Sequence record: MT612988.1
Length of the DNA stretch: 64,000 bases
Reading direction: 5' to 3' (one strand)
Both the position numbers and the translations under genes were made by a program. This document shows, piece by piece, positions 1-60,987 of the stretch; the stretch's first letter is position 1, and each line of letters begins with the position of its first letter. The notes beneath the pieces were generated by a model. The model worked only from the letters and a program-made list of their open reading frames with translations. It made no database searches and had not been told where the DNA came from.

Positions 1-1239
1 AACATCATCAACCATTTCAGTCACTGGACGTAGACTAGACATGATATTCGGGTGGAATACACGATTCGACTCAGCCATTGTTGAAAATGCAGTCACTGTT
101 TGACGCTCAGGGGTAACACAACCATCGAACGATAGCATAGCTTCAGCAAATGCTTTACAGTCAAAACGTTTCACGCCTTTACGTTCCATCATCGCAATCA
201 TATCAAGAAGCGGGTAACCTGCTTCAGATAATTCAACGCGATATTCTTCACACACACGACCTGCACGCATAGCATGTTCCGCGTTTGTTAGAACAATACT
301 TGTGTTGTTGTGTTTCAGCTTCCAACCGTTGTCAAAATACGCTTCTTTCACATCAACAAGATTTTGCCATGCAGTCGATGTCAGTGGCGCAGTCGCGATT
401 TCTTTCGTGAAAACGTTCTGAGCATGTTCAATCATGGTGATGTTCTGTTTCAGATCGTATGCTTTGAATCCTTCTAGCATCGGCAAGCCAGTATCGTCTT
501 TACGTTCACGAGCGTATGATACGTCTTTCGCTTCTTTTACAATGAACAAGTCCATGATTTTACGGTTCAGTGCAGCCAATGTAAGTGCATTTTTACCAGA
601 CTTGATTTTCATCTCAGTGATGTCAGACAGTTCGGCTTTTGAATCAACCGATTCAACAGTCACATAAACGTCACCAAGCTCGATGTTTTCAGCCATTGAC
701 AGTATTTCAGATGCTGAATTGTCATCAATTGATAGCGATTCAATTACAAGCTTATCAGAATCAGCAAGATTAATTTTCATTTCACGCATAGGGAAAACAA
801 CGTGAATGTCATTTTTCTTATAACCAAGCTTAGTCGCTTCGGCAACAACCTGATCTAAGTAACCGCCTTTAATCACGATGCTAGGAAGACGAGCTTCAGT
901 ACACATGATCATAGACTTAACTTGCTGTAGCTCATGTGCTGGCAATGATAAGAATTCGTTTTCCATAAGCAAGTTGATTGTGCTTACGTTCTCGCTCAGA
1001 TTAATATCGAAGTTTTTCTCATCGACGTTTTTATCTTCAGCAAGTTTAGTACTCATGATAGATTTAAGCTCATTTGCCTTTTCCATCATGCCGATAGTTG
1101 TTTCAACGCCTTTGCCTTTGCTGAACTCAGTAGATGCAGTGCCTAGCTCAACAATAACTTGACCAAACTTAGGGTAGATTTTACCACCCTGAGTTTGACG
1201 GCGATTTTCACTCAGAAATGAGTCAAAGTTACCTAACAT
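1..1239 (-). CDS. Hypothetical protein, >413 aa, runs off the window edge; not in the ORF track
   Basis: Hand translation from ATG 1239 (MLGNFDSFLSENRRQ...) stays open to position 1. AAGGAA SD overlaps the gp55 stop. Confidence 0.85.
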   Translation of the reverse strand, partial: MLGNFDSFLSENRRQTQGGKIYPKFGQVIVELGTASTEFSKGKGVETTIGMMEKANELKSIMSTKLAEDKNVDEKNFDINLSENVSTINLLMENEFLSLPAHELQQVKSMIMCTEARLPSIVIKGGYLDQVVAEATKLGYKKNDIHVVFPMREMKINLADSDKLVIESLSIDDNSASEILSMAENIELGDVYVTVESVDSKAELSDITEMKIKSGKNALTLAALNRKIMDLFIVKEAKDVSYARERKDDTGLPMLEGFKAYDLKQNITMIEHAQNVFTKEIATAPLTSTAWQNLVDVKEAYFDNGWKLKHNNTSIVLTNAEHAMRAGRVCEEYRVELSEAGYPLLDMIAMMERKGVKRFDCKAFAEAMLSFDGCVTPERQTVTAFSTMAESNRVFHPNIMSSLRPVTEMVDDV

Positions 1240-23804: not shown

Positions 23805-24301
23805 TATTTCACCCCGCTCTCACCGAACCCACTAGCACCGCGGTCAGTTTCTTCGTCGAAATCATCAACTACTTCAAACTGCACGTTTTTCACGTAAGTG
23901 TGGAAAATCAACTGACAGATACGATCACCGCGCTCAATATGCAGCACGTCGTCGCCTTCGTTGCGAATCTTGATCATGATTTCGCCTTGATAGTTCGCGT
24001 CGATAATCCCGATTGTGTTTGCAAGGCGTAAGAAGTGCTTGAACCCAAGACCGCTTCGCGGTGCAATCGCGCCGTATACACCTAAATCAGTGAATACTCG
24101 ATGTAGTGGGTGCGAACCAATATGAATCTTGACACCAGACGGGATAACGACTGAATCACCCGGTTGTAGCTCGATTGACTCTTCAATTGCAGCACGCAGA
24201 TCAATACCCGCGTCATCTGGGTCTTTCACACCAATTGGCTCAATTGCTTTTAGACCAAGTTCTTTGTTTTCTTTGTAGTGAGGCAGGTAAATAATCTTCA
24301 T
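23804..24301 (-). CDS. dut: Trimeric dUTPase
   Basis: AGIDL, PRSGLG, GIIDANYQGEI, RICQL, RGASGFGESG. Confidence 0.95.
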   Translation of the reverse strand: MKIIYLPHYKENKELGLKAIEPIGVKDPDDAGIDLRAAIEESIELQPGDSVVIPSGVKIHIGSHPLHRVFTDLGVYGAIAPRSGLGFKHFLRLANTIGIIDANYQGEIMIKIRNEGDDVLHIERGDRICQLIFHTYVKNVQFEVVDDFDEETDRGASGFGESGVK

Positions 24302-25359
24302 TAAATTTTCTTCCATCTGTTAAGTCGATTTGTAGCCATTAGACCGCTAACGGCATTTTCATAAATGTATTGCTGAATGAACTCAGCAGATACACCAGCT
24401 TTGACAAAATCATTGATGTCTTTCTTATCAATAATTTGAGGTGGGAGCTTATCCCAAATAACAACACGCTCACCCGCTCTGATTAGAACTTGAAGACGCT
24501 TTACAACGTCTGGGTGGCGAGGCTCATTATCAAGCGCCCAAATGCGATTCCCCGCATAGGGTGCATTTTGTGGACTGACTTGTCCACCTACTATAGCACA
24601 GCAATTGTAGAGGAATAAACTATCAATCGGGCCCTCAACGAAAATAACAGGGTCATCTTCATTGATACGCTCTGTGCCGTATATCTTGTTGAAATCGTCG
24701 TCAATTTTAATGGTCATGTATCGTTGAGCATGTTTGTTTGTCAACGCACGACCTTGAACAGCAATCAAACCTTCTTTGTTATAGATAGGTATTACCAATC
24801 GAGGGTGGTCATTTCTAATCTCACCTTCGTACAAATCTGGGCGAAGCGTCTTAGCCATTTGAGACCAGCCACGAGTAAACCCAAGCAAATGCCACTTGTC
24901 TTTAGGGATTTTTCTAGATTCGAGGTATTTGTGCATCACATGACCATCTTTAAGGGCAGTGATATTATAGAAAAGTTGCTCTTCTTGTTCTTTCTCAACG
25001 ACAGTCGCTTCTTTCTTTTCAACGACTGGTTCAGGTTCGCGTTCTTTACGCTCACGAGAATTGCGCTCTTTGAATAACTCGACGCGATACTGAGAAAACA
25101 ACGATGGTTCGTGATCTTTCAAAAAAGTATACAGCGATTCGTTATAGTCACAGTTCCAGCAACTACAACGTAAATGAATCTCACCAGAACGTGTCTTAAC
25201 TTCATTAATCCAGAAACGTGTCTTGTACTTGTTCTTTTTCGAGTCACCACAAATCGGGCATCTTGCATTGATTTTGAATGGACGATGACTATGCACCGTA
25301 GGGAGTAGTAATCGATGCTGAAGCATCTTGGCGTATTGTATATCAATCAATATTTGCAT
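24301..25359 (-). CDS. 61: DNA primase gp61
   Basis: RCPICGDS...CWNC zinc finger, QGRAL, VEGPIDSLF, DNEPRH, KDIND. Confidence 0.96.
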   Translation of the reverse strand: MQILIDIQYAKMLQHRLLLPTVHSHRPFKINARCPICGDSKKNKYKTRFWINEVKTRSGEIHLRCSCWNCDYNESLYTFLKDHEPSLFSQYRVELFKERNSRERKEREPEPVVEKKEATVVEKEQEEQLFYNITALKDGHVMHKYLESRKIPKDKWHLLGFTRGWSQMAKTLRPDLYEGEIRNDHPRLVIPIYNKEGLIAVQGRALTNKHAQRYMTIKIDDDFNKIYGTERINEDDPVIFVEGPIDSLFLYNCCAIVGGQVSPQNAPYAGNRIWALDNEPRHPDVVKRLQVLIRAGERVVIWDKLPPQIIDKKDINDFVKAGVSAEFIQQYIYENAVSGLMATNRLNRWKKI

Positions 25360-25379
25360 AATTCAACCTCCGTGTAGTG

Positions 25380-25408
25380 ATTATACACGGCATCACGATA
25401 CGATAAAC
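25380..25408 (-). promoter_or_regulatory. GTTTAT-17-TATAAT promoter for primase
   Basis: -35 at 25403-25408, -10 at 25380-25385, GGAGG SD. Confidence 0.7.
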
Positions 25409-25410
25409 AT

Positions 25411-25432
25411 AAAAAAGCCCCGTTTCCGAGGC
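25411..25432 (-). terminator. Terminator of the late 3-gene operon
   Basis: gcctcg-gaaa-cggggc followed by T6. Confidence 0.8.
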
Positions 25433-25438
25433 GTTTTA

Positions 25439-25918
25439 TTATTCGAAATGTCTGAACTTCTTCAGCTTTTTCTTTTTCTTTTTCTTACCGATAGTTTCAG
25501 GACCTGCATTAGTTACAGCACCAGTCGTTTCACCAGAAGCAATCGACTCTGGTGAGCTACTACCGTCACCCGCATCACCTGCAACAACAGCTTCTTCGAC
25601 TCGAATACACTCTTTCGCGAAATCTTCAGATAACCCGTATTCTTTTGCAAGCTCAATCAGCAACAAATAAGACGCGCCATAATCAAGTGCTGTTTTACCA
25701 CCTGGTAATGCACCAACCATGCGCTTGATATTTCTCACAGTAACATGAAACATCGTCCAGTTACTTTTCTCTTGTGCAGTTACAGGGTCACGCAACTTCT
25801 TACCATCTGCGTCGATGATACCCATTCGATATGCTTCCCAACGTTCAAAACGAAGATGAAGCAAACGAGACAGACGAAGAGCATAAAAACCATCTGCACC
25901 ACGTTTAGCTACACTCAT
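25439..25918 (-). CDS. gp61.1-family protein with C-terminal gp23 N-arm-like segment and poly-Lys tail
   Basis: FYALRL...WEAYRMGIIDADG...TMFH...RNIKR recalled from the T4-like 61.1 family; adjacent to gp61. Confidence 0.7.
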   Translation of the reverse strand: MSVAKRGADGFYALRLSRLLHLRFERWEAYRMGIIDADGKKLRDPVTAQEKSNWTMFHVTVRNIKRMVGALPGGKTALDYGASYLLLIELAKEYGLSEDFAKECIRVEEAVVAGDAGDGSSSPESIASGETTGAVTNAGPETIGKKKKKKKLKKFRHFE

Positions 25919-39173: not shown

Positions 39174-39203
39174 GTGTCGTTTCCTATATGTTTATATCGT
39201 GTG

Positions 39204-39211
39204 TCTAAATA
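39204..39211 (+). promoter_or_regulatory. Late promoter variant TCTAAATA for gp34-35
   Basis: TAAATA core about 40 nt before ATG 39252. Confidence 0.7.
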
Positions 39212-39251
39212 TATCATAGCGAATTGCATATCTAAACAAAGGAGCAATGAA

Positions 39252-42200
39252 ATGTCAGAATTCCGCAGAGCATTTCGTGCGTCAGGTCTTGATGCAAGTG
39301 GTCAGAATGTCATTAACGTAGCAGACCCACGAGCAAATGAATTGTTCGACGGTATTAACCAAGGCTACTTTATTGAAGAGAACACTGTTCAAGAGTATGA
39401 CCCAACACGAGATCACTATAAAGTAGACTTTATCGTTGAGTTCAATCAACGTCTATACAAAAACATTACCGAAATCAATGCACCTGAACCTTTTGACTCG
39501 CAGAAGTGGCAGAAAATGCGTACCGACCCTGAATGGGAAGATACTGATTCATCGGTAGGCGCAAACGTCGGTGACTTCTTGTTGTTAACAGCAAGCTCGG
39601 CAATCACTATTACACTGCCTGAAACACCATTAACAGGTGACACAGTTACAATCAAAGACGGTAAAGGCGTTCTTACAACTTACCCTTGTACGATTGCAGC
39701 AGCGGGCGGCTTGACGATTCAACATTACGGCATTGACGGTTCAATTGAGTCTAAACCGAGTATTTCATTCAATACCCCTAACAGCACTATATTCTTAGTG
39801 TACAACGGTATTGCATGGACATATCAGATCAATCAAGAGTTATACAATACGTATATTGACGACAGTCACCCAACTCAACAGGGTGGGTACTTATCAACTG
39901 GTGGTTATTTCACTAACGTTGGCGAGACAGTCACATATGACGGTTCAGTTAAGAAAATTGCAATTTCTGTACCACTGAACCCGAACGTGGGCGATACAAT
40001 TCATCTTAAAGATGTTGCGTATCTTGAGAATCAAACGTCGATTCAAATCGGTGTGAACCCGACTGCTACGGGTCAGGTTATTCAAGACCCTATTTCAGGC
40101 GAACGTAGTTCTGTTATCAGTCTTGATACTATCGGCGGCGCTGATATCACATTTATCGATGATAACGGTACTGGCGTATGGGTAATCACAATCGCGAACA
40201 ACCCGCATTTATGGAACTATGTCGGTGATTCAAGCGCGGTTGAATTGAAGCCTCGTTCTCGTTACGCTATCGAAATCGCAGATGCTGTTCCTGCAATGAC
40301 GATCACACTACCAGAAAAACCAGCAGATGGTGACTGGATTGAGATCTCACACAACAAAACAGCTCATAAGAAAGTAACGATTCAAGTTCACCCGAATTTC
40401 GGTGATGATGACCCAGGTCACGGCCCCGATGAATACAAAGTATTCTTGGACTTTGAAACATATCGTTATCAAAAATACCGTCATTACGTTGATTTCGTTC
40501 CATTCTTCGTTGAATCATTCGAAATTAGTGATTATGACAGCGGTTATTCACTAGTTCTATACTACGACGCGAGTCGTAAAGTATGGTCGTTCGGTAACAT
40601 CGCGACTCGTATCGATATCGCTGATGAACTATACCGTAAACGCCCGGGTATCGTGCCATTAGCTGACCCAACGGAAGCTCTAGCACACGGGATTGAATAT
40701 GCGCACCCTGAAGATGCAGCAGACCCTTGGGCTGATCAAAACCCACTGAAAGACCACGTAATCACGGTAGAGACGCTTGACGCTCGTCGTGCAGGTGAAC
40801 AGCAAGTTGGTATGGCTCGTGTTGCTACTCTTGGAACTGATGAAGCTCTTGAAGAATCGCGTTCTGGTACGTTTGTTCGTTACCCAGATACAAACTTCAG
40901 ACATGATCTGTTCATAACACCACGTAGTTTGAATGCGCGTACAGCAACTGAAACACGTCGCGGTGTAGTTGAAATCGCAACTCAAAACGAGACGCGAAGC
41001 ACAACTAACGATGTTCAAGTTCTAACACCGATGAAATTCCACGCTGCACAAGCTGAAGAAGATCTAACAGGTGTTGCAAAACTAGTCGAAGCGTCGAACA
41101 ACATCAATGCTGGTGGTATTGTTACATCAACAGCGAATATGCGTTCAGACCGTTCAGTAAATGGTCTTGACAATACAGTATATGATAAAACTGATCATCT
41201 GCGTATCGTAACGCCAAAAATGCTTGATGAGTATCGTGCTACAGAGAATCAACCTGGTACATTATGGGTTGCTAAGAGCAGTGAACTCCGCATCAACGAC
41301 TCAACAGTTGATAACGCGATCATCACGCCTAAGAAATTAGCAGCGTGGAAAGCAAGCTCAACGGTTCGTGGTATTGCTCGTTCTGCCACACAGTCTGAAG
41401 CAAATGCAACAACAGGAACTGGTGAATCGTGGACAACAGTCTTCATCACACCAGAAACGTTGAATAGCAGAACAGCAACTGAATCACGTCGTGGTGTTGC
41501 TGAAATCGCAACTCAAACTGAAGTTGACTCAGGGACAGACGATACTCGTATTGTTTCACCACTTAAACTGAAGACATGGCTTGATCGTGACCATTTCGTG
41601 ACGGCAGGAACAGATGGTCTATCGCATACTGGTACAGTGTGGGGCGACGTTACATTCAGCATCGCGTCAGCGACTGAAACACAACGTGGTACACTACAAG
41701 TTGCGACTCAAGTAGAAGCGAATGCTCAAACTGGTGCGCTTGATGATGTAATCATCACACCACAGAAGTTAAATGCGCGTCGTGCTACAGAAACGCAAAC
41801 CGGTATCGTGCGTCTTGCGACTCAAGCTGAAGTCGAAGCAGCGACAGCTAGTAATGAAATTGTTATTACTCCGAGTGATTTGCTACACTGGACTCGTTAC
41901 TCTGACAGCTCACGTGCAAATGAAAGTCGTTATGGTAACGTACAAATCGCAACACCAGCAGAAACATTTGTTGGTAACAGTACAGACGGTTCAACACAAG
42001 CGTATACGTCGTACTTGCGTGTTCCGTATGCAGTTTCACCTTACGGTCTGCATTATGCATTGCGCAACTACTTACCGCTAAACGCTAAAGCTGATGACTC
42101 AGAATTACTAGATGGCTTGAACAGTACACAATTTGCACGTCGTGACATCGACCAAACAATCAATGGCACGTATACGTTTAGTGGCGAATTCGTGCAAACG

Positions 42201-42959
42201 AAAGGTGGCGGTTATTTCTTAGTTGCAAACCCAACGAACGACGCAGCGAGTGTAAAACTCGACTGGTTTAATGACGAACCTCGCATTCGTGTGGGCGGTA
42301 GTGGTAACGGGTCTTCTTCACCATTCTCAATCGCAGGGACAGGTGACACAACTCGATGGCAAGTAAACTCAACTGGTTATACGACTCAACCAGGTGGGGC
42401 ATCGTTCGGTGATACAATATATGAAAATGAAGCGACTGCTAACGTTGATACAACATACGGGTCTTATTCGAGCCCGTCAAGCGGTTCACTTCGTCAGAAG
42501 TACTTGGGTATTAACAACGTAGCTAAAGCGTCTGAGAAGTGGGTTACAGCGCGTACAGTAACGTTCACCGGCGACTTGTCTGGTAACTTTACGTTAGATG
42601 GTAGCGGAAACGTTACTACAAACATTCAAGTTAATGATTACAGTCACGCTCACTCAGGTGAGAACATCACAACGGGTACAATTAACAATGATCGTCTGCG
42701 CAAATCAAGCCGCACGAATCAAGGTATTGTACAAGTAACAAGTGACGTGCGTACAGCAGACCCAGTGAATGCTTCAGACCCACACCAAGCTCTATCGGCT
42801 GGTGCTGGTAAGACGCTATCTGAGCGTATCGACTTGTTCACGCCAGACGGTGGTACAGGTGAGAGCGTTAAATACAGAGACTACATTCAAGTTGGTTCTG
42901 TAAGAATGTCAACTAATAATCAAGGCGTGTTGGAGTTTACGTACGGACACGCTATATAA
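39252..42959 (+). CDS. 34: Long tail fiber proximal subunit gp34
   Basis: FRASGLDA...INVADP N-terminus; repeated TPxxL...ATETRRG.AEIATQ units; divergent from rnh as in T4. Confidence 0.92.
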   Translation: MSEFRRAFRASGLDASGQNVINVADPRANELFDGINQGYFIEENTVQEYDPTRDHYKVDFIVEFNQRLYKNITEINAPEPFDSQKWQKMRTDPEWEDTDSSVGANVGDFLLLTASSAITITLPETPLTGDTVTIKDGKGVLTTYPCTIAAAGGLTIQHYGIDGSIESKPSISFNTPNSTIFLVYNGIAWTYQINQELYNTYIDDSHPTQQGGYLSTGGYFTNVGETVTYDGSVKKIAISVPLNPNVGDTIHLKDVAYLENQTSIQIGVNPTATGQVIQDPISGERSSVISLDTIGGADITFIDDNGTGVWVITIANNPHLWNYVGDSSAVELKPRSRYAIEIADAVPAMTITLPEKPADGDWIEISHNKTAHKKVTIQVHPNFGDDDPGHGPDEYKVFLDFETYRYQKYRHYVDFVPFFVESFEISDYDSGYSLVLYYDASRKVWSFGNIATRIDIADELYRKRPGIVPLADPTEALAHGIEYAHPEDAADPWADQNPLKDHVITVETLDARRAGEQQVGMARVATLGTDEALEESRSGTFVRYPDTNFRHDLFITPRSLNARTATETRRGVVEIATQNETRSTTNDVQVLTPMKFHAAQAEEDLTGVAKLVEASNNINAGGIVTSTANMRSDRSVNGLDNTVYDKTDHLRIVTPKMLDEYRATENQPGTLWVAKSSELRINDSTVDNAIITPKKLAAWKASSTVRGIARSATQSEANATTGTGESWTTVFITPETLNSRTATESRRGVAEIATQTEVDSGTDDTRIVSPLKLKTWLDRDHFVTAGTDGLSHTGTVWGDVTFSIASATETQRGTLQVATQVEANAQTGALDDVIITPQKLNARRATETQTGIVRLATQAEVEAATASNEIVITPSDLLHWTRYSDSSRANESRYGNVQIATPAETFVGNSTDGSTQAYTSYLRVPYAVSPYGLHYALRNYLPLNAKADDSELLDGLNSTQFARRDIDQTINGTYTFSGEFVQTKGGGYFLVANPTNDAASVKLDWFNDEPRIRVGGSGNGSSSPFSIAGTGDTTRWQVNSTGYTTQPGGASFGDTIYENEATANVDTTYGSYSSPSSGSLRQKYLGINNVAKASEKWVTARTVTFTGDLSGNFTLDGSGNVTTNIQVNDYSHAHSGENITTGTINNDRLRKSSRTNQGIVQVTSDVRTADPVNASDPHQALSAGAGKTLSERIDLFTPDGGTGESVKYRDYIQVGSVRMSTNNQGVLEFTYGHAI

Positions 42960-57849: not shown

Positions 57850-59394
57850 TTATAGACCCTTAACGAATACACGACGGAAGTAAGCGTTTTTACCCATTGA
57901 AGCTGCAACAGGCGCGCCGTTACCAACTTTTTCAGCAGCCTTAGTAGGATCTGCGAATGGGTTAACTTGAATACCGTAACGAGTTTTGAAACCAATTACA
58001 GGTTGGAAGTTCTTGCTGTCTGAACCACGTAGTGGAGTCAGCGGTACGTATGGTGAGTAGAACACACCCGCGTCCATTTCAGTAGAACCTTTGAAACCAA
58101 CTGTGAAGTAATCGTTCACTGCGTATTGGTCGATGAACACTTTGAAGCGACCACCTAGAACACCCGCGAACACAGTTTGGTTTGTGTCAGTGTTCATTGA
58201 ACCGTCTTGCATACCTTGTGCAGCAGGGCCAACAAGAGTATCAGTCATTGATAGTGCAGAAACTACGTTGCGTGATGCAATGATGAAGTTACCGTTACCA
58301 CGACCAGTTTGACGACCGATTTCGTTCGCTTCTTTCTCAATTTGAATTAGTAGAGCTTTGTAAGCTTCACCAGCCCAACGAGCACCTTTAACGTCTACAG
58401 CGTCTGCGAAGTCGAATACACCCGCTGCGCCTTGACCTTGAGTCCAACCAGACTTACCGATTTGCGCTTGAGAGTTAACTAGGTTAACGATTTCGCGGTT
58501 AAGCTCAACCATAACTTCGTTAGCAAGAATACCGCTAAGTTCAGCGTCAGCGTCTAGACCGTGTACAGCACGTAGATCTTGTGCAAGCTCGATTGAGTAT
58601 TGAGCTTTCAATTGACGTGATTTCGCTTCAACAACTTGTTTGTCGATGCGGAATGACATCTCGTTCCACTCGTTGTTGCTTGAACCGTTGAAGTTCTCTT
58701 GTAGTTCAGCCTGAGATGTTGCCATACCAGCGTCGATCTCAACTAGAAGACCACCTGCAACTGCGTCAGTGTATTCTGTAGCAGTCATTTCACCTGCAAC
58801 TGCTAGAGTAACAGCGCCAAGTGCTAGGAAGTAACGAGTGTCAACGTCGCCGCCAGAAGTAGTTACTTCAGCTTTGTACGGAGTACCGTCAGTTGCAGCA
58901 CCAGTAGTTGGGAAATCTGCAATTGTTGATGCAGCAGCTTGACCAGAGAACGAAGCGTCAGCTTGACGAGTCGGGTGGAAAGCTTCTTTACCAGTTAGCG
59001 GGTCTTTACCGTATACTGAGCGAAGTGTGAATACTTGGCTAGTTGGGCCAGTCATTGGCTGAACACCAGCGATATCGAATGCGATAAGCTGAGGAATAGC
59101 ACGACGAACCATACCCATTACAGTCGGACCGATGTTTGTTACTGCACCAGTAGTAACACCTTGAGCGATGTTAGACGGATCGTAACCATGGTCACCGTTA
59201 ACTACAGCTTCGTTTAGACCAGCATTGAATGCTTCGATTAACTGTGGGTCACGGTACATTGGATCGTTGTTGATGTCGCGATCTTGGTTTTCAAAGATTT
59301 TCGACATGATTTTTTGCTTAGTTGCAGTCGCAATCTCTGGCATTTCCGCACCGTCTGCTTCAAGCAATTCTTTCCATTTTTCAGTTAGGTTCAT
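57850..59394 (-). CDS. 23: Major capsid protein gp23
   Basis: LNE|AVVNGDHGY, VQPMTGPT, WNEMSFRIDK, YSIELAQDLRAVHG, YSPYVPL, GFKTRYG. Confidence 0.98.
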   Translation of the reverse strand: MNLTEKWKELLEADGAEMPEIATATKQKIMSKIFENQDRDINNDPMYRDPQLIEAFNAGLNEAVVNGDHGYDPSNIAQGVTTGAVTNIGPTVMGMVRRAIPQLIAFDIAGVQPMTGPTSQVFTLRSVYGKDPLTGKEAFHPTRQADASFSGQAAASTIADFPTTGAATDGTPYKAEVTTSGGDVDTRYFLALGAVTLAVAGEMTATEYTDAVAGGLLVEIDAGMATSQAELQENFNGSSNNEWNEMSFRIDKQVVEAKSRQLKAQYSIELAQDLRAVHGLDADAELSGILANEVMVELNREIVNLVNSQAQIGKSGWTQGQGAAGVFDFADAVDVKGARWAGEAYKALLIQIEKEANEIGRQTGRGNGNFIIASRNVVSALSMTDTLVGPAAQGMQDGSMNTDTNQTVFAGVLGGRFKVFIDQYAVNDYFTVGFKGSTEMDAGVFYSPYVPLTPLRGSDSKNFQPVIGFKTRYGIQVNPFADPTKAAEKVGNGAPVAASMGKNAYFRRVFVKGL

Positions 59395-59464: not shown

Positions 59465-60322
59465 TTATCGATTAGTACGAGCAGCTTTCAAGTATGCAGC
59501 CATAGATGGTACTGCGGATTCTTTCATATCTTTGTCGTCTTTCTTGTCAGCGTCGTCTTCACCGTCTTTTTTATCAGCCGGTTTTTTGTCGTCATCACTT
59601 GGCATATCTTCTTTTTCAGCAAGTTTGATGCCTGATGCGAACTTGATAACACTATTTAGATTGTCTTCAAAGTTCTCGTCGAAGCGAATTGATTCAGCTA
59701 GGTCAGAAACTTTCTCTTTTTGAGAGTCAGCCATACCAGCAGTCACGCGCTCGATGATGATATTTTTTTCTACGTAGTTAGCGTATTCTTTGTGTTGACG
59801 GTTCTCGATAACAACTGTATCTAGACGACCTTCAAGATCTTGAATGTTTTCTTCAAGAGCTTCGATCATATCGATCTTCTCGTCTGGGCAGTGAACGTTG
59901 TTCTCAATGAATACATTCTTCATGCCTTCCATCAACCCGTCGAACATTGAAACTTTTAGACCGTTTTCAACAGCTAGTTTGTTTTCAGTCATCCATGTTT
60001 CAACAACGTGGTCTAGATATGAATCTAGTTTATTCGACATTTGCTCTGCTAGATGTTCACCGTATTTTTCAGCGGCTTCATCAAGCTCTGCTTTGTGTTC
60101 GTTGATTACTGCTTCTGCCTTTTCAGCAGCTTCAGCGATATGTGCTTCAGCAAGCTCAACGGCTTTAGTTTTGATTACACTTTCGAAAACAGTGCTGAAC
60201 TTATTACGAACATCTTCGGAAAGTTCAACTGATTCAAAAATGCCATCCAAAGCAGTAGTGATTTTTGCATCGTCTTGCGATACAGCTTCAAGTAGTTGCT
60301 CTTTGATTTGCATCTTCTTCAA
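59465..60322 (-). CDS. 22: Prohead core scaffold gp22 (likely start ATG 60313)
   Basis: IFESVELS...FSTVFE; Glu-rich helical protein; 21-22-23 synteny. Confidence 0.92.
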   Translation of the reverse strand: MKKMQIKEQLLEAVSQDDAKITTALDGIFESVELSEDVRNKFSTVFESVIKTKAVELAEAHIAEAAEKAEAVINEHKAELDEAAEKYGEHLAEQMSNKLDSYLDHVVETWMTENKLAVENGLKVSMFDGLMEGMKNVFIENNVHCPDEKIDMIEALEENIQDLEGRLDTVVIENRQHKEYANYVEKNIIIERVTAGMADSQKEKVSDLAESIRFDENFEDNLNSVIKFASGIKLAEKEDMPSDDDKKPADKKDGEDDADKKDDKDMKESAVPSMAAYLKAARTNR

Positions 60323-60342: not shown

Positions 60343-60350
60343 TATTTATA
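60343..60350 (-). promoter_or_regulatory. Late promoter TATAAATA (gp22)
   Basis: Exact consensus overlapping the gp21 stop. Confidence 0.8.
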
Positions 60351-60987
60351 AGAGAGTTTTTAACGTTTCCGCTAGTTTCGCAAATTCAGCGTCATTACTT
60401 TCTGTAATTTCTTCTGTTTTTACTGACTTAGCAGCTTCATTTGACTCAGTTACTGGTTTAACGTAAGCAGCAGGTGCACTAGGACCCCACACTACATCAA
60501 CGCCTACTGTAAGACGGAAATCTTGCACTTCGTTGATGCCGTCAACTTGCTTAACTGAACCAAGACCTCTTGAACTCACGCCCGGTACCCAACCACCTTC
60601 GATCAGACCTCGAACTATTTGTCCCTTCGGTGTATTTAGTACGATAGCTTTACCCATTACGTTATCGCCGTCCCACCACAACTCAGTAATTCGAATCGCA
60701 GCTTCAGCGGGGTCAACGTTTGAACGACTTGGGTGATTAAGCTCGCCCAACGCTTGATTCGTGTTGACTTGTTCTTTCATGTATTTAGATACAGCATTTT
60801 CCATGACTTTTTTCGGGTATCGACGACCATTACGGTTTACGACATTCGATTGCATGAAAATACCTTCGATGTACAAGTCACCGCCCTTTTCCGTGGGCAT
60901 TTTCGCTTCAACAAGAGGCTTTTCACCGAAGCTATCAGCGCAACCGCTAGATAAACCCCAGTCTTCAATTAAGAGTTGTAATTCCAT
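60346..60987 (-). CDS. 21: Prohead protease gp21
   Basis: IEGIFMQ, NRNGRRY, GELNHP, GVSSRGLGS, DVVWGPSAP. Confidence 0.97.
   Translation of the reverse strand: MELQLLIEDWGLSSGCADSFGEKPLVEAKMPTEKGGDLYIEGIFMQSNVVNRNGRRYPKKVMENAVSKYMKEQVNTNQALGELNHPSRSNVDPAEAAIRITELWWDGDNVMGKAIVLNTPKGQIVRGLIEGGWVPGVSSRGLGSVKQVDGINEVQDFRLTVGVDVVWGPSAPAAYVKPVTESNEAAKSVKTEEITESNDAEFAKLAETLKTLL

Follow-up and report, generated by a model that had tools for sequence, protein, structure and literature searches.

A homologue of the capsid maturation site and N-fist in gp61.1 of T4-like phages, a possible precursor of a small internal head peptide

Introduction

The closest described relatives in kind to the protein analysed here are the internal proteins of phage T4 (IPI, IPII and IPIII), which are targeted to the head by a short leader and processed by the prohead protease gp21. 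According to a review (PMC9026906), the first ten residues of IPIII suffice for head incorporation (Mullaney and Black), residues 4 and 7 of the leader are the main determinants of targeting and residues 8 and 10 those of processing, and the leader by itself carries foreign proteins into T4 heads. Much longer propeptides are known from the head proteins of giant phages such as SPN3US and phiKZ, in which a related prohead protease cuts after a Glu and takes off over 100 residues (PMC5694885).

The major capsid protein of T4, gp23, loses 65 N-terminal residues (PMC9546572), and the mature gp23* begins with the N-fist, a 25-residue N-terminal knot (PMC9958956). According to structural papers, T4 capsid residues 66-105 of the unexpanded head lack order and lie within the shell, where they are probably on the scaffold, and an outward movement of the capsid N-terminal region on expansion gives the N-fist and the N-arm. 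The capsid changes A66D, A94V and G97S alter the length of the T4 head, and the recognition of the capsid cleavage region inside the prohead has been called mysterious in a T4 head review.

Here we describe gp61.1, a small protein that carries a homologue of this very region of the capsid protein. The analysis started from a stretch of 64,000 nucleotides of sequence record MT612988.1 (hereafter, the window). In the literature searched, we found no paper on the function of gene 61.1, on its leader or on its likeness to gp23, although an older remark may exist.

Results

The window belongs to a KVP40-like Vibrio myophage and, over 3 kb, is 100% identical to vB_ValM_R10Z, phi-ST2 and PVA23. Its gp61.1 gene, of the long form (Table 1), lies directly upstream of the primase gene 61, and its start codon shares 1 base with the stop codon of the upstream gene. 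The same position directly upstream of gene 61 is observed in T4, nt-1, D480, EnC07, Melville, SA79RD, Ac42, X20 and Ah1. One or two small ORFs separate the two genes in RB16 and JSE, and in the short stretch examined of PEi20 a mobE homing-endonuclease gene follows 61.1. On the other side, in the window and in most genera, the neighbour is either a gene with a UvsW.1 domain or gene 41, and in T4 the gene is located just downstream of dmd, 61.4 (tifA), sp and 61.2 (adfA).

Table 1. Features of the window relevant to gp61.1, with the evidence for each.
Feature	Coordinates	Strand	Evidence or remark
DNA primase gene 61, conserved downstream neighbour	24301..25359	-	PHROG 47, E 1.5e-83
Terminator-like hairpin with T-run, directly after the 61.1 stop	25417..25432	-	scan
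gp61.1 gene, long form	25439..25918	-	ORF list; 159 codons plus stop
Lys/Arg-rich tail, residues 141-159, net charge +8	25442..25498	-	translation
N-fist-like segment, residues 110-140	25499..25591	-	19/28 identical to capsid residues 63-90
V107-E108-E109, aligned with capsid L60-N61-E62	25592..25600	-	BLASTP, hhalign
N-terminal domain, residues 1-106, proposed long propeptide	25601..25918	-	AlphaFold2
Second aliphatic-x-acidic motif, L96-S97-E98	25625..25633	-	11 residues upstream of the first
Upstream gene, UvsW.1 domain, 274 aa	25918..26742	-	Pfam PF11637, E 2.5e-33
Major capsid protein gp23, 514 aa	57850..59394	-	Pfam Gp23, E 4.9e-120; PDB 6uzc (T4 gp23), E 6e-192
Capsid residues 60-90, L-N-E/A maturation site and N-fist, original of the copied segment	59125..59217	-	
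Scaffolding protein gp22	59465..60322	-	Pfam T4_CASP, E 4.7e-71
Prohead protease gp21	60346..60987	-	Pfam Peptidase_S77, E 1.9e-98; 49% identity with T4 gp21

The gene is annotated as gp61.1 in phage nt-1 and other relatives. The window protein is matched by PHROG 2086 over residues 1-153 (E 1.6e-53) and by PHROG 1823, a profile of 54 positions, over residues 102-152 (E 2.5e-17); NCBIfam and Pfam searches of gp61.1 returned nothing. With tblastn, the long form was found in 656 phage records and the T4 form of the module in 1433, compared with 1489 records with a T4-type capsid gene (counted at E 1e-100), and the two counts are nearly equal for each host genus. gp61.1 is therefore near-universal where a T4-type capsid gene is present, and its distribution is neither patchy nor host-dependent.

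A search of the module profile against 1.84 billion representative proteins retrieved 59 clusters, which fall into three size classes only: proteins of about 50-70 aa, proteins of about 140-165 aa, and a small number in which an additional C-terminal domain brings the length to 237-251 aa. Beyond the module and its basic tail, the metagenomic proteins P0159, P0171 and P0178 contain another leader-like motif and an approximately 100-aa domain, reflecting either a fusion of 61.1 to a second leader-bearing protein or a read-through in gene calling. The short forms, which have a leader of 10-15 aa in place of the long front domain, were also considered as split long forms, and this was rejected because the genes upstream of them (dc1 in JSE, 61.2 in T4) are not split-off N-terminal domains. 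Homologues of the front domain exist in distant phages outside the Straboviridae, namely the Sinorhizobium phage phiN3 and phage Melnitz-1. The phiN3 homologue (1495-1920 of the stretch examined) is located two genes upstream of the primase and has an aliphatic-x-Glu motif and a basic tail, and its C-terminus gave no tblastn match at a second place in its own genome. The Melnitz homologue (1495-2106 of the stretch examined) combines the N-terminal domain with an unrelated C-terminus that is long and acidic.

In GenBank and UniRef, gp61.1 proteins are found under the names "major capsid protein", "major capsid domain-containing protein" and "capsid vertex protein". These names are wrong and arise from a similarity of 35 residues. 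A separate case is observed in Salmonella phage Melville (9773-12336), where two adjacent genes are both annotated as "capsid vertex protein"; this pair may be a tandem duplication of gene 24.

The similarity itself is clear. BLASTP aligns residues 107-148 of gp61.1 with residues 60-98 of the window capsid protein (21 of 42 identical, one 3-residue gap, E 3e-8), and when the C-terminal 60 aa of gp61.1 were searched against the whole window with tblastn, the capsid gene was the sole other good match (E 5e-8). A recount reproduces the figure given by the sequence-only reading in which the likeness was first noticed, that is, 19 of 28 residues identical after the Glu with one 3-residue gap (the capsid coordinates 59125-59208 correspond to residues 63-90). 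One weak tblastn match of the C-terminus (E 0.002), at 42276-42353 on the plus strand within the ORF 39174..42959, was discarded as a chance similarity to a G/S-rich stretch of a 1261-aa tail-fibre-like protein.

At the family level, a split-profile hhalign comparison of the gp61.1 and capsid families gave a probability of 98.5% (E 3.5e-15), the sole match of the gp61.1 family profile in the PDB was T4 gp23 residues 51-98 (E 7e-7), and residues 51-98 of the window capsid protein are matched by the profiles of both PHROG 2086 and PHROG 1823. The homologous stretch begins at about P10 of the maturation site and extends as far as the Gly-Pro at the end of the N-fist. A full-profile hhalign had suggested a likeness of 87 columns extending into the capsid propeptide, and this extension was rejected since the separated halves showed none; indeed, the gp61.1 front domain and the capsid N-terminal propeptide have no homology detectable by hhalign (probability 0.1%). 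The Pfam Gp23 domain (PF07068) starts at capsid residue 86, so that the likeness of about 35 residues lies ahead of it, and the gp61.1 proteins of the window, T4, EnC07 and RB16 do not match it at E 10. The idea of gp61.1 as an HK97-fold capsid protein was discarded for lack of this match.

The sequence-only reading had described the segment as a copy of the capsid N-arm. The copying from the capsid protein is real, but the copied part consists of the cleavage site and the N-fist, and the N-arm proper is absent: the likeness ends at the Gly-Pro, where the N-arm proper starts, and the gp61.1 tail stands in the place of the N-arm. By homology, the position then assigned to the cleavage site is correct. 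The mature T4 chain solved as 5vf3_A has its first residue one before window capsid residue 64, and thus the bond between Glu62 and Ala63 is equivalent to that between Glu65 and Ala66 in T4.

The two segments have been separate for a long time. Only 11 of the 20 identical residues aligned between the window gp61.1 and capsid protein share the same codon, at a nucleotide identity of 59%, so the many synonymous differences remarked on earlier are genuine. Across genomes, the nucleotide identity between the two segments is 49-62% and the share of identical residues with the same codon goes from one quarter to slightly over half, which rules out recent gene conversion. Between the window and phage nt-1, 19 codons of the gp61.1 segment differ synonymously and 3 non-synonymously. 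The family-level homology and the codon divergence agree with the initial suggestion of protein-level selection rather than recent duplication.

Twelve phages with both genes, from at least nine genera, were compared in pairs. Of the 31 ungapped columns, seven do not vary among the 24 sequences (the P1 Glu, Gly-Asp, an Ile and three Gly), and two further columns (Gly and Pro) are each broken by one sequence. Other columns distinguish the two families. The His that follows Gly-Asp in 12/12 capsid proteins is Ser or Ala in 12/12 gp61.1, a capsid Tyr (11/12) is replaced by Gly or Ser, the Ile or Val before the capsid Gly-Pro corresponds to Lys, Ala, Arg or Pro, and P1', which is Ala in 12/12 capsid proteins, can be Asp, Glu, Ser or Ala. 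Co-variation of the segment with the cognate capsid protein, which the sequence-only reading had proposed to look for, gave no signal, the identity being 52.8% for cognate and 51.7% for non-cognate pairs (permutation p 0.16 for identity and 0.22 for BLOSUM scores, 12 phages), in a test of low power because the capsid segment is 75% identical across these phages. The lack of a cognate excess, the low nucleotide identity, the 19 versus 3 codon differences and the family-specific columns together indicate that the gp61.1 segment is an old paralogue under purifying selection that has diverged functionally, and not as a mimic that tracks its model.

The short form of T4 adds a different line of evidence. 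T4 gp61.1 has 54 aa, with ten leader residues ending in I-K-E, then the capsid-like segment, and finally a Lys-run followed by acidic residues. It matches the window gp61.1 (E 5e-10), the window capsid protein (E 5e-9) and T4 gp23 residues 57-93 (E 6e-9). It shares residues 1-7 with IPI, 7 of its 10 leader residues match IPII/IPIII, and with Phe4, Phe7, Ile8 and Glu10 it has all four published capsid-targeting determinants. Such a leader is also present in PEi20 and in other short-form orthologues, with an aromatic residue at position 4, Phe or Val at 7, Ile, Leu or Met at 8 and Glu at 10, and in some of them the same pattern is shifted by a small insertion. This T4-type leader is the strongest new evidence that members of the family could enter the prohead and be cut by gp21. 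The window gp61.1 has no leader of about 10 residues with an aromatic residue at 4 and Phe at 7; it has a helical front of 109 aa instead. Among the ATG-started ORFs of at least 40 aa in the window, the only one that fits the leader pattern is a 413-aa ORF cut by the window edge (1-1239, minus strand, PHROG 14490), which starts with aromatic-x-x-Phe-Leu-x-Glu, as in the T4 leaders; its product is for this reason a candidate packaged protein.

The long forms have a constant order, consisting of the front part (109 residues in 8 of the 9 long-form phages examined, from six genera), the aliphatic-x-Glu motif, a capsid-like segment of 28-31 residues and a Lys/Arg-rich tail. The P1 Glu is present in 88/88 aligned long forms, with Leu, Ile, Met or Val at P3 in 87/88; it is likewise present in the gp61.1 of all 12 paired phages and in all short forms examined. 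The following residue is Asp or Glu in 70/111 long forms. The second motif (Table 1) has Leu, Ile or Met at its first position in all 88 long forms and Glu (71) or Asp (16) at the third, and may be an additional protease site.

The Lys-rich tail reported after the segment is present in the translation as described. Among the 111 motif-matched long forms, the 105 that gave a tail average 18.6 aa, with 7.4 Lys plus Arg and 1.3 Asp plus Glu, and the predicted mature peptide has a pI of 9.7 in the window and 9.7-10.3 in long forms. The exceptions are T4 (pI 5.0, tail net charge 0) and PEi20 (pI 6.5, tail net charge +1), and consequently a DNA-binding tail, as first suggested, is not a universal trait of the family. 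The last seven residues, K-K-F-R-H-F-(D/E) (25442-25462, minus strand), are conserved across most of the Vibrio-phage clade, and other genera lack them.

An AlphaFold2 model of the window protein, built on the 88-sequence alignment, has a mean pLDDT of 68. Residues 11-70, at 82-93, are modelled as helices and a short hairpin, and residues 113-159 are below 50, the segment being predicted as disordered. Foldseek found no match of the model in the PDB (best E 3.9). In BFVD it retrieved only unnamed phage proteins, some of them of 387-913 aa, and the front domain therefore appears to be a module that is also used in larger phage proteins.

Regarding expression, a hairpin comparable to that after 61.1 in the window is observed in most of the relatives examined. 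No exact late promoter (TATAAATA) occurs within 400 nt upstream of 61.1 in 13 phages, and matches of 7/8 at -20 to -26 in four phages were not counted because they overlap the upstream stop codon. The gap between 61.1 and gene 61 (25360-25416, minus strand) contains a stretch resembling a T4 early-type promoter, with a GTTTAT-type upstream box, about 17 nt and TATAAT; it is also present in nt-1 and D480, and was not among the results of the sigma-70 scan. In T4, 61.1 is assigned to the early RNA class and has no protein value, and ipII and ipIII have early RNA and late protein (supplementary table, PMC9697503). Early transcription of 61.1 is thus no argument against a head protein, and the missing protein value is weak evidence, since the sole long peptide left after cleavage would be semi-tryptic and trypsin would fragment the tail, so that a standard tryptic search would overlook the product.

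Discussion

The closest known kind of protein is that of the leader-targeted, gp21-processed internal proteins of T4. With IPI, IPII and IPIII, gp61.1 shares the short-form leader, the aliphatic-x-Glu site, a basic cluster and early mRNA. In contrast, the internal proteins are poorly conserved among T4-like phages, according to the review cited above (PMC9026906), whereas gp61.1 is near-universal; moreover, the mature part of gp61.1 is homologous to the capsid protein, its long forms have a 109-aa domain instead of a 10-aa leader, and its packaging is predicted from sequence while the T4 internal proteins are carried in the head. The window long form has the aliphatic-x-Glu motif (at the level of the motif) and a basic predicted mature product but, as it lacks the leader, it is not a plain member of this group. 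The relation with gp23 is one of homology over about 35 residues, covering the maturation site and the first 28 mature residues; gp61.1 differs from gp23 by having no HK97-fold body, no N-arm and nothing of what follows, and by the replacement of the His, Tyr and Ile of the N-fist. The proposed 109-aa propeptide resembles those of the SPN3US and phiKZ head proteins, although their mature parts are large proteins and that of gp61.1 would be a peptide of 4-5 kDa, and no sequence relation was found. Finally, T4 Dmd, TifA and AdfA are, like gp61.1, small early proteins and are encoded beside 61.1 in T4, but they have no sequence relation with it, the adjacency is absent in the window, and gp61.1 is spread far wider and more evenly.

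We propose, giving it an even chance of being correct, that gp61.1 is a precursor from which gp21 releases a small internal head peptide. Its front part, the 109-residue helical domain here and the 10-residue leader in T4, would bring the protein into the assembling prohead core; for the window long form, this targeting is suggested by analogy with the short forms. There, gp21 would cut after the conserved Glu (Glu109 here, Glu10 in T4), in parallel with the capsid cut after Glu62 (Glu65 in T4), and the product would begin with Ala110 here and with Asp11 in T4. The invariant Glu (88/88), the aliphatic P3 (87/88) and the T4-type leader give this cut at the aligned Glu independent support. The product would be a peptide of 41-52 residues (4-5 kDa), composed of 28-31 residues of N-fist paralogue followed by the Lys/Arg cluster. 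Since the capsid N-terminus is inside the shell before expansion, the invariant residues shared by both families most likely serve a common partner inside the prohead, protease or scaffold, and not the docking site of the mature N-fist on the outer surface; gp22 is a candidate for this partner. The Lys/Arg cluster may first bind the peptide to the acidic core and afterwards to DNA, as in the basic internal proteins.

Several other observations bear on this precursor model. A gp21-type protease is encoded in the window, a second domain with a leader follows in some metagenomic relatives, and the near-universal spread (1433 versus 1489 records) fits a morphogenetic role better than an accessory one. 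Against it count the acidic residue that follows the Glu in 70/111 long forms, the missing protein value in the T4 time course, the lack of a late promoter within 400 nt upstream in all 13 phages and, in the window, the lack of a short leader. The literature searched yielded no case in which proteomics or structural work had detected gp61.1 in proheads or virions, and the high-resolution maps of the T4 head report no such peptide, only an unassigned helical density under the vertex protein. A bolder version is that all T4-like phages, T4 included, carry an unrecognised virion-internal N-fist-paralogue peptide, which, once cut by gp21, replaces the capsid N-termini in the inner-shell or scaffold contacts they leave on expansion, holds DNA by its Lys/Arg cluster and might enter the host with the DNA. 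We put this forward tentatively, as a conjecture that is probably wrong in at least some part.

Among the alternatives, gp61.1 could be an assembly regulator absent from the virion, acting as a pseudo-substrate or competitor for gp21 or gp22 that tunes the timing of maturation or the geometry of the shell and is then degraded or lost. The copy covers exactly the cleavage site and the residues that follow it, from a capsid region thought to contact the scaffold and in which A66D, A94V and G97S alter head length; most gp61.1 proteins have Asp or Glu at the position equivalent to Ala66, and the replacements specific to gp61.1 are in keeping with a competitor able to bind one partner but not to dock on the shell. 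A protease decoy, already suggested in the sequence-only reading, is a conceivable role. The universal Lys/Arg cluster is nevertheless left unexplained by a regulator, and because a regulator and a precursor both require prohead entry, they are hard to tell apart by sequence. We consider a regulator unlikely, though a serious contender.

A cytoplasmic role is also conceivable, in which gp61.1 is an early anti-defence protein, either a decoy for a sensor of the N-terminal part of the capsid protein or a member of an anti-toxin island. The Gol peptide presumably starts approximately where the similarity between gp61.1 and the capsid protein ends, in which case Gol would not be what the gp61.1 module mimics. 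Imitating a phage protein that sets off a defence follows a known logic, the Gol region of the capsid protein being the activator of Lit (PMC3014915), and in T4, where its mRNA is early, 61.1 adjoins the dmd-tifA-adfA region, which has been called an anti-TA island with other genes as candidate anti-toxins (bioRxiv 10.1101/2022.04.14.488369). However, no such island surrounds the gene in the window or in most genera, a near-universal and strongly conserved gene contrasts with the patchy distribution of accessory anti-defence genes, and the short-form leader and the invariant Glu would have no explanation. Taken together, an anti-defence function seems decidedly improbable.

The sequence-only reading had suggested a released peptide that fills vacant N-fist or N-arm sites at the vertices or the portal, or tethers DNA to the shell. 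In its favour, the neighbours of the vertex protein and of the portal have no incoming N-fist and the portal-facing N-fists are disordered (PMC7136217), and the expanded T4 head has an unassigned density under the vertex protein; most gp61.1 tails are, in addition, strongly basic. Yet that density is helical, the segment is predicted by AlphaFold2 to be disordered, the T4 tail has no net charge, and an internal peptide would lie within the shell, on whose outer surface the mature N-fist sits. The invariant capsid His, Tyr and Ile are replaced in every gp61.1 examined and no co-variation with the cognate capsid protein was detected (p 0.16-0.22, at low power). The filling of N-arm or N-fist sites is thus not supported, and we regard it as very improbable. 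As for the possibility that the 5' end of the capsid gene was partly duplicated and left a remnant without function, the short extent of the likeness (about 35 residues) would suit it, but the conservation of the segment, which the sequence-only reading had made a condition of its proposal and which is borne out here by a module kept in about 1400 genomes of many genera with invariant columns, together with the 19 synonymous versus 3 non-synonymous differences between two Vibrio phages, leaves this explanation with almost no credibility.

T4 head assembly is among the best-studied morphogenetic pathways, yet gene 61.1 of T4 is without an assigned role. In practical terms, the capsid names carried by many database records for gp61.1 are wrong. 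Should the precursor model be true, the list of T4-like head proteins would miss a near-universal component, and the rule by which a leader plus an aliphatic-x-Glu site means a packaged protein would extend to a capsid-derived peptide. gp61.1 may then provide a natural probe for whatever recognises the capsid cleavage region inside the prohead.
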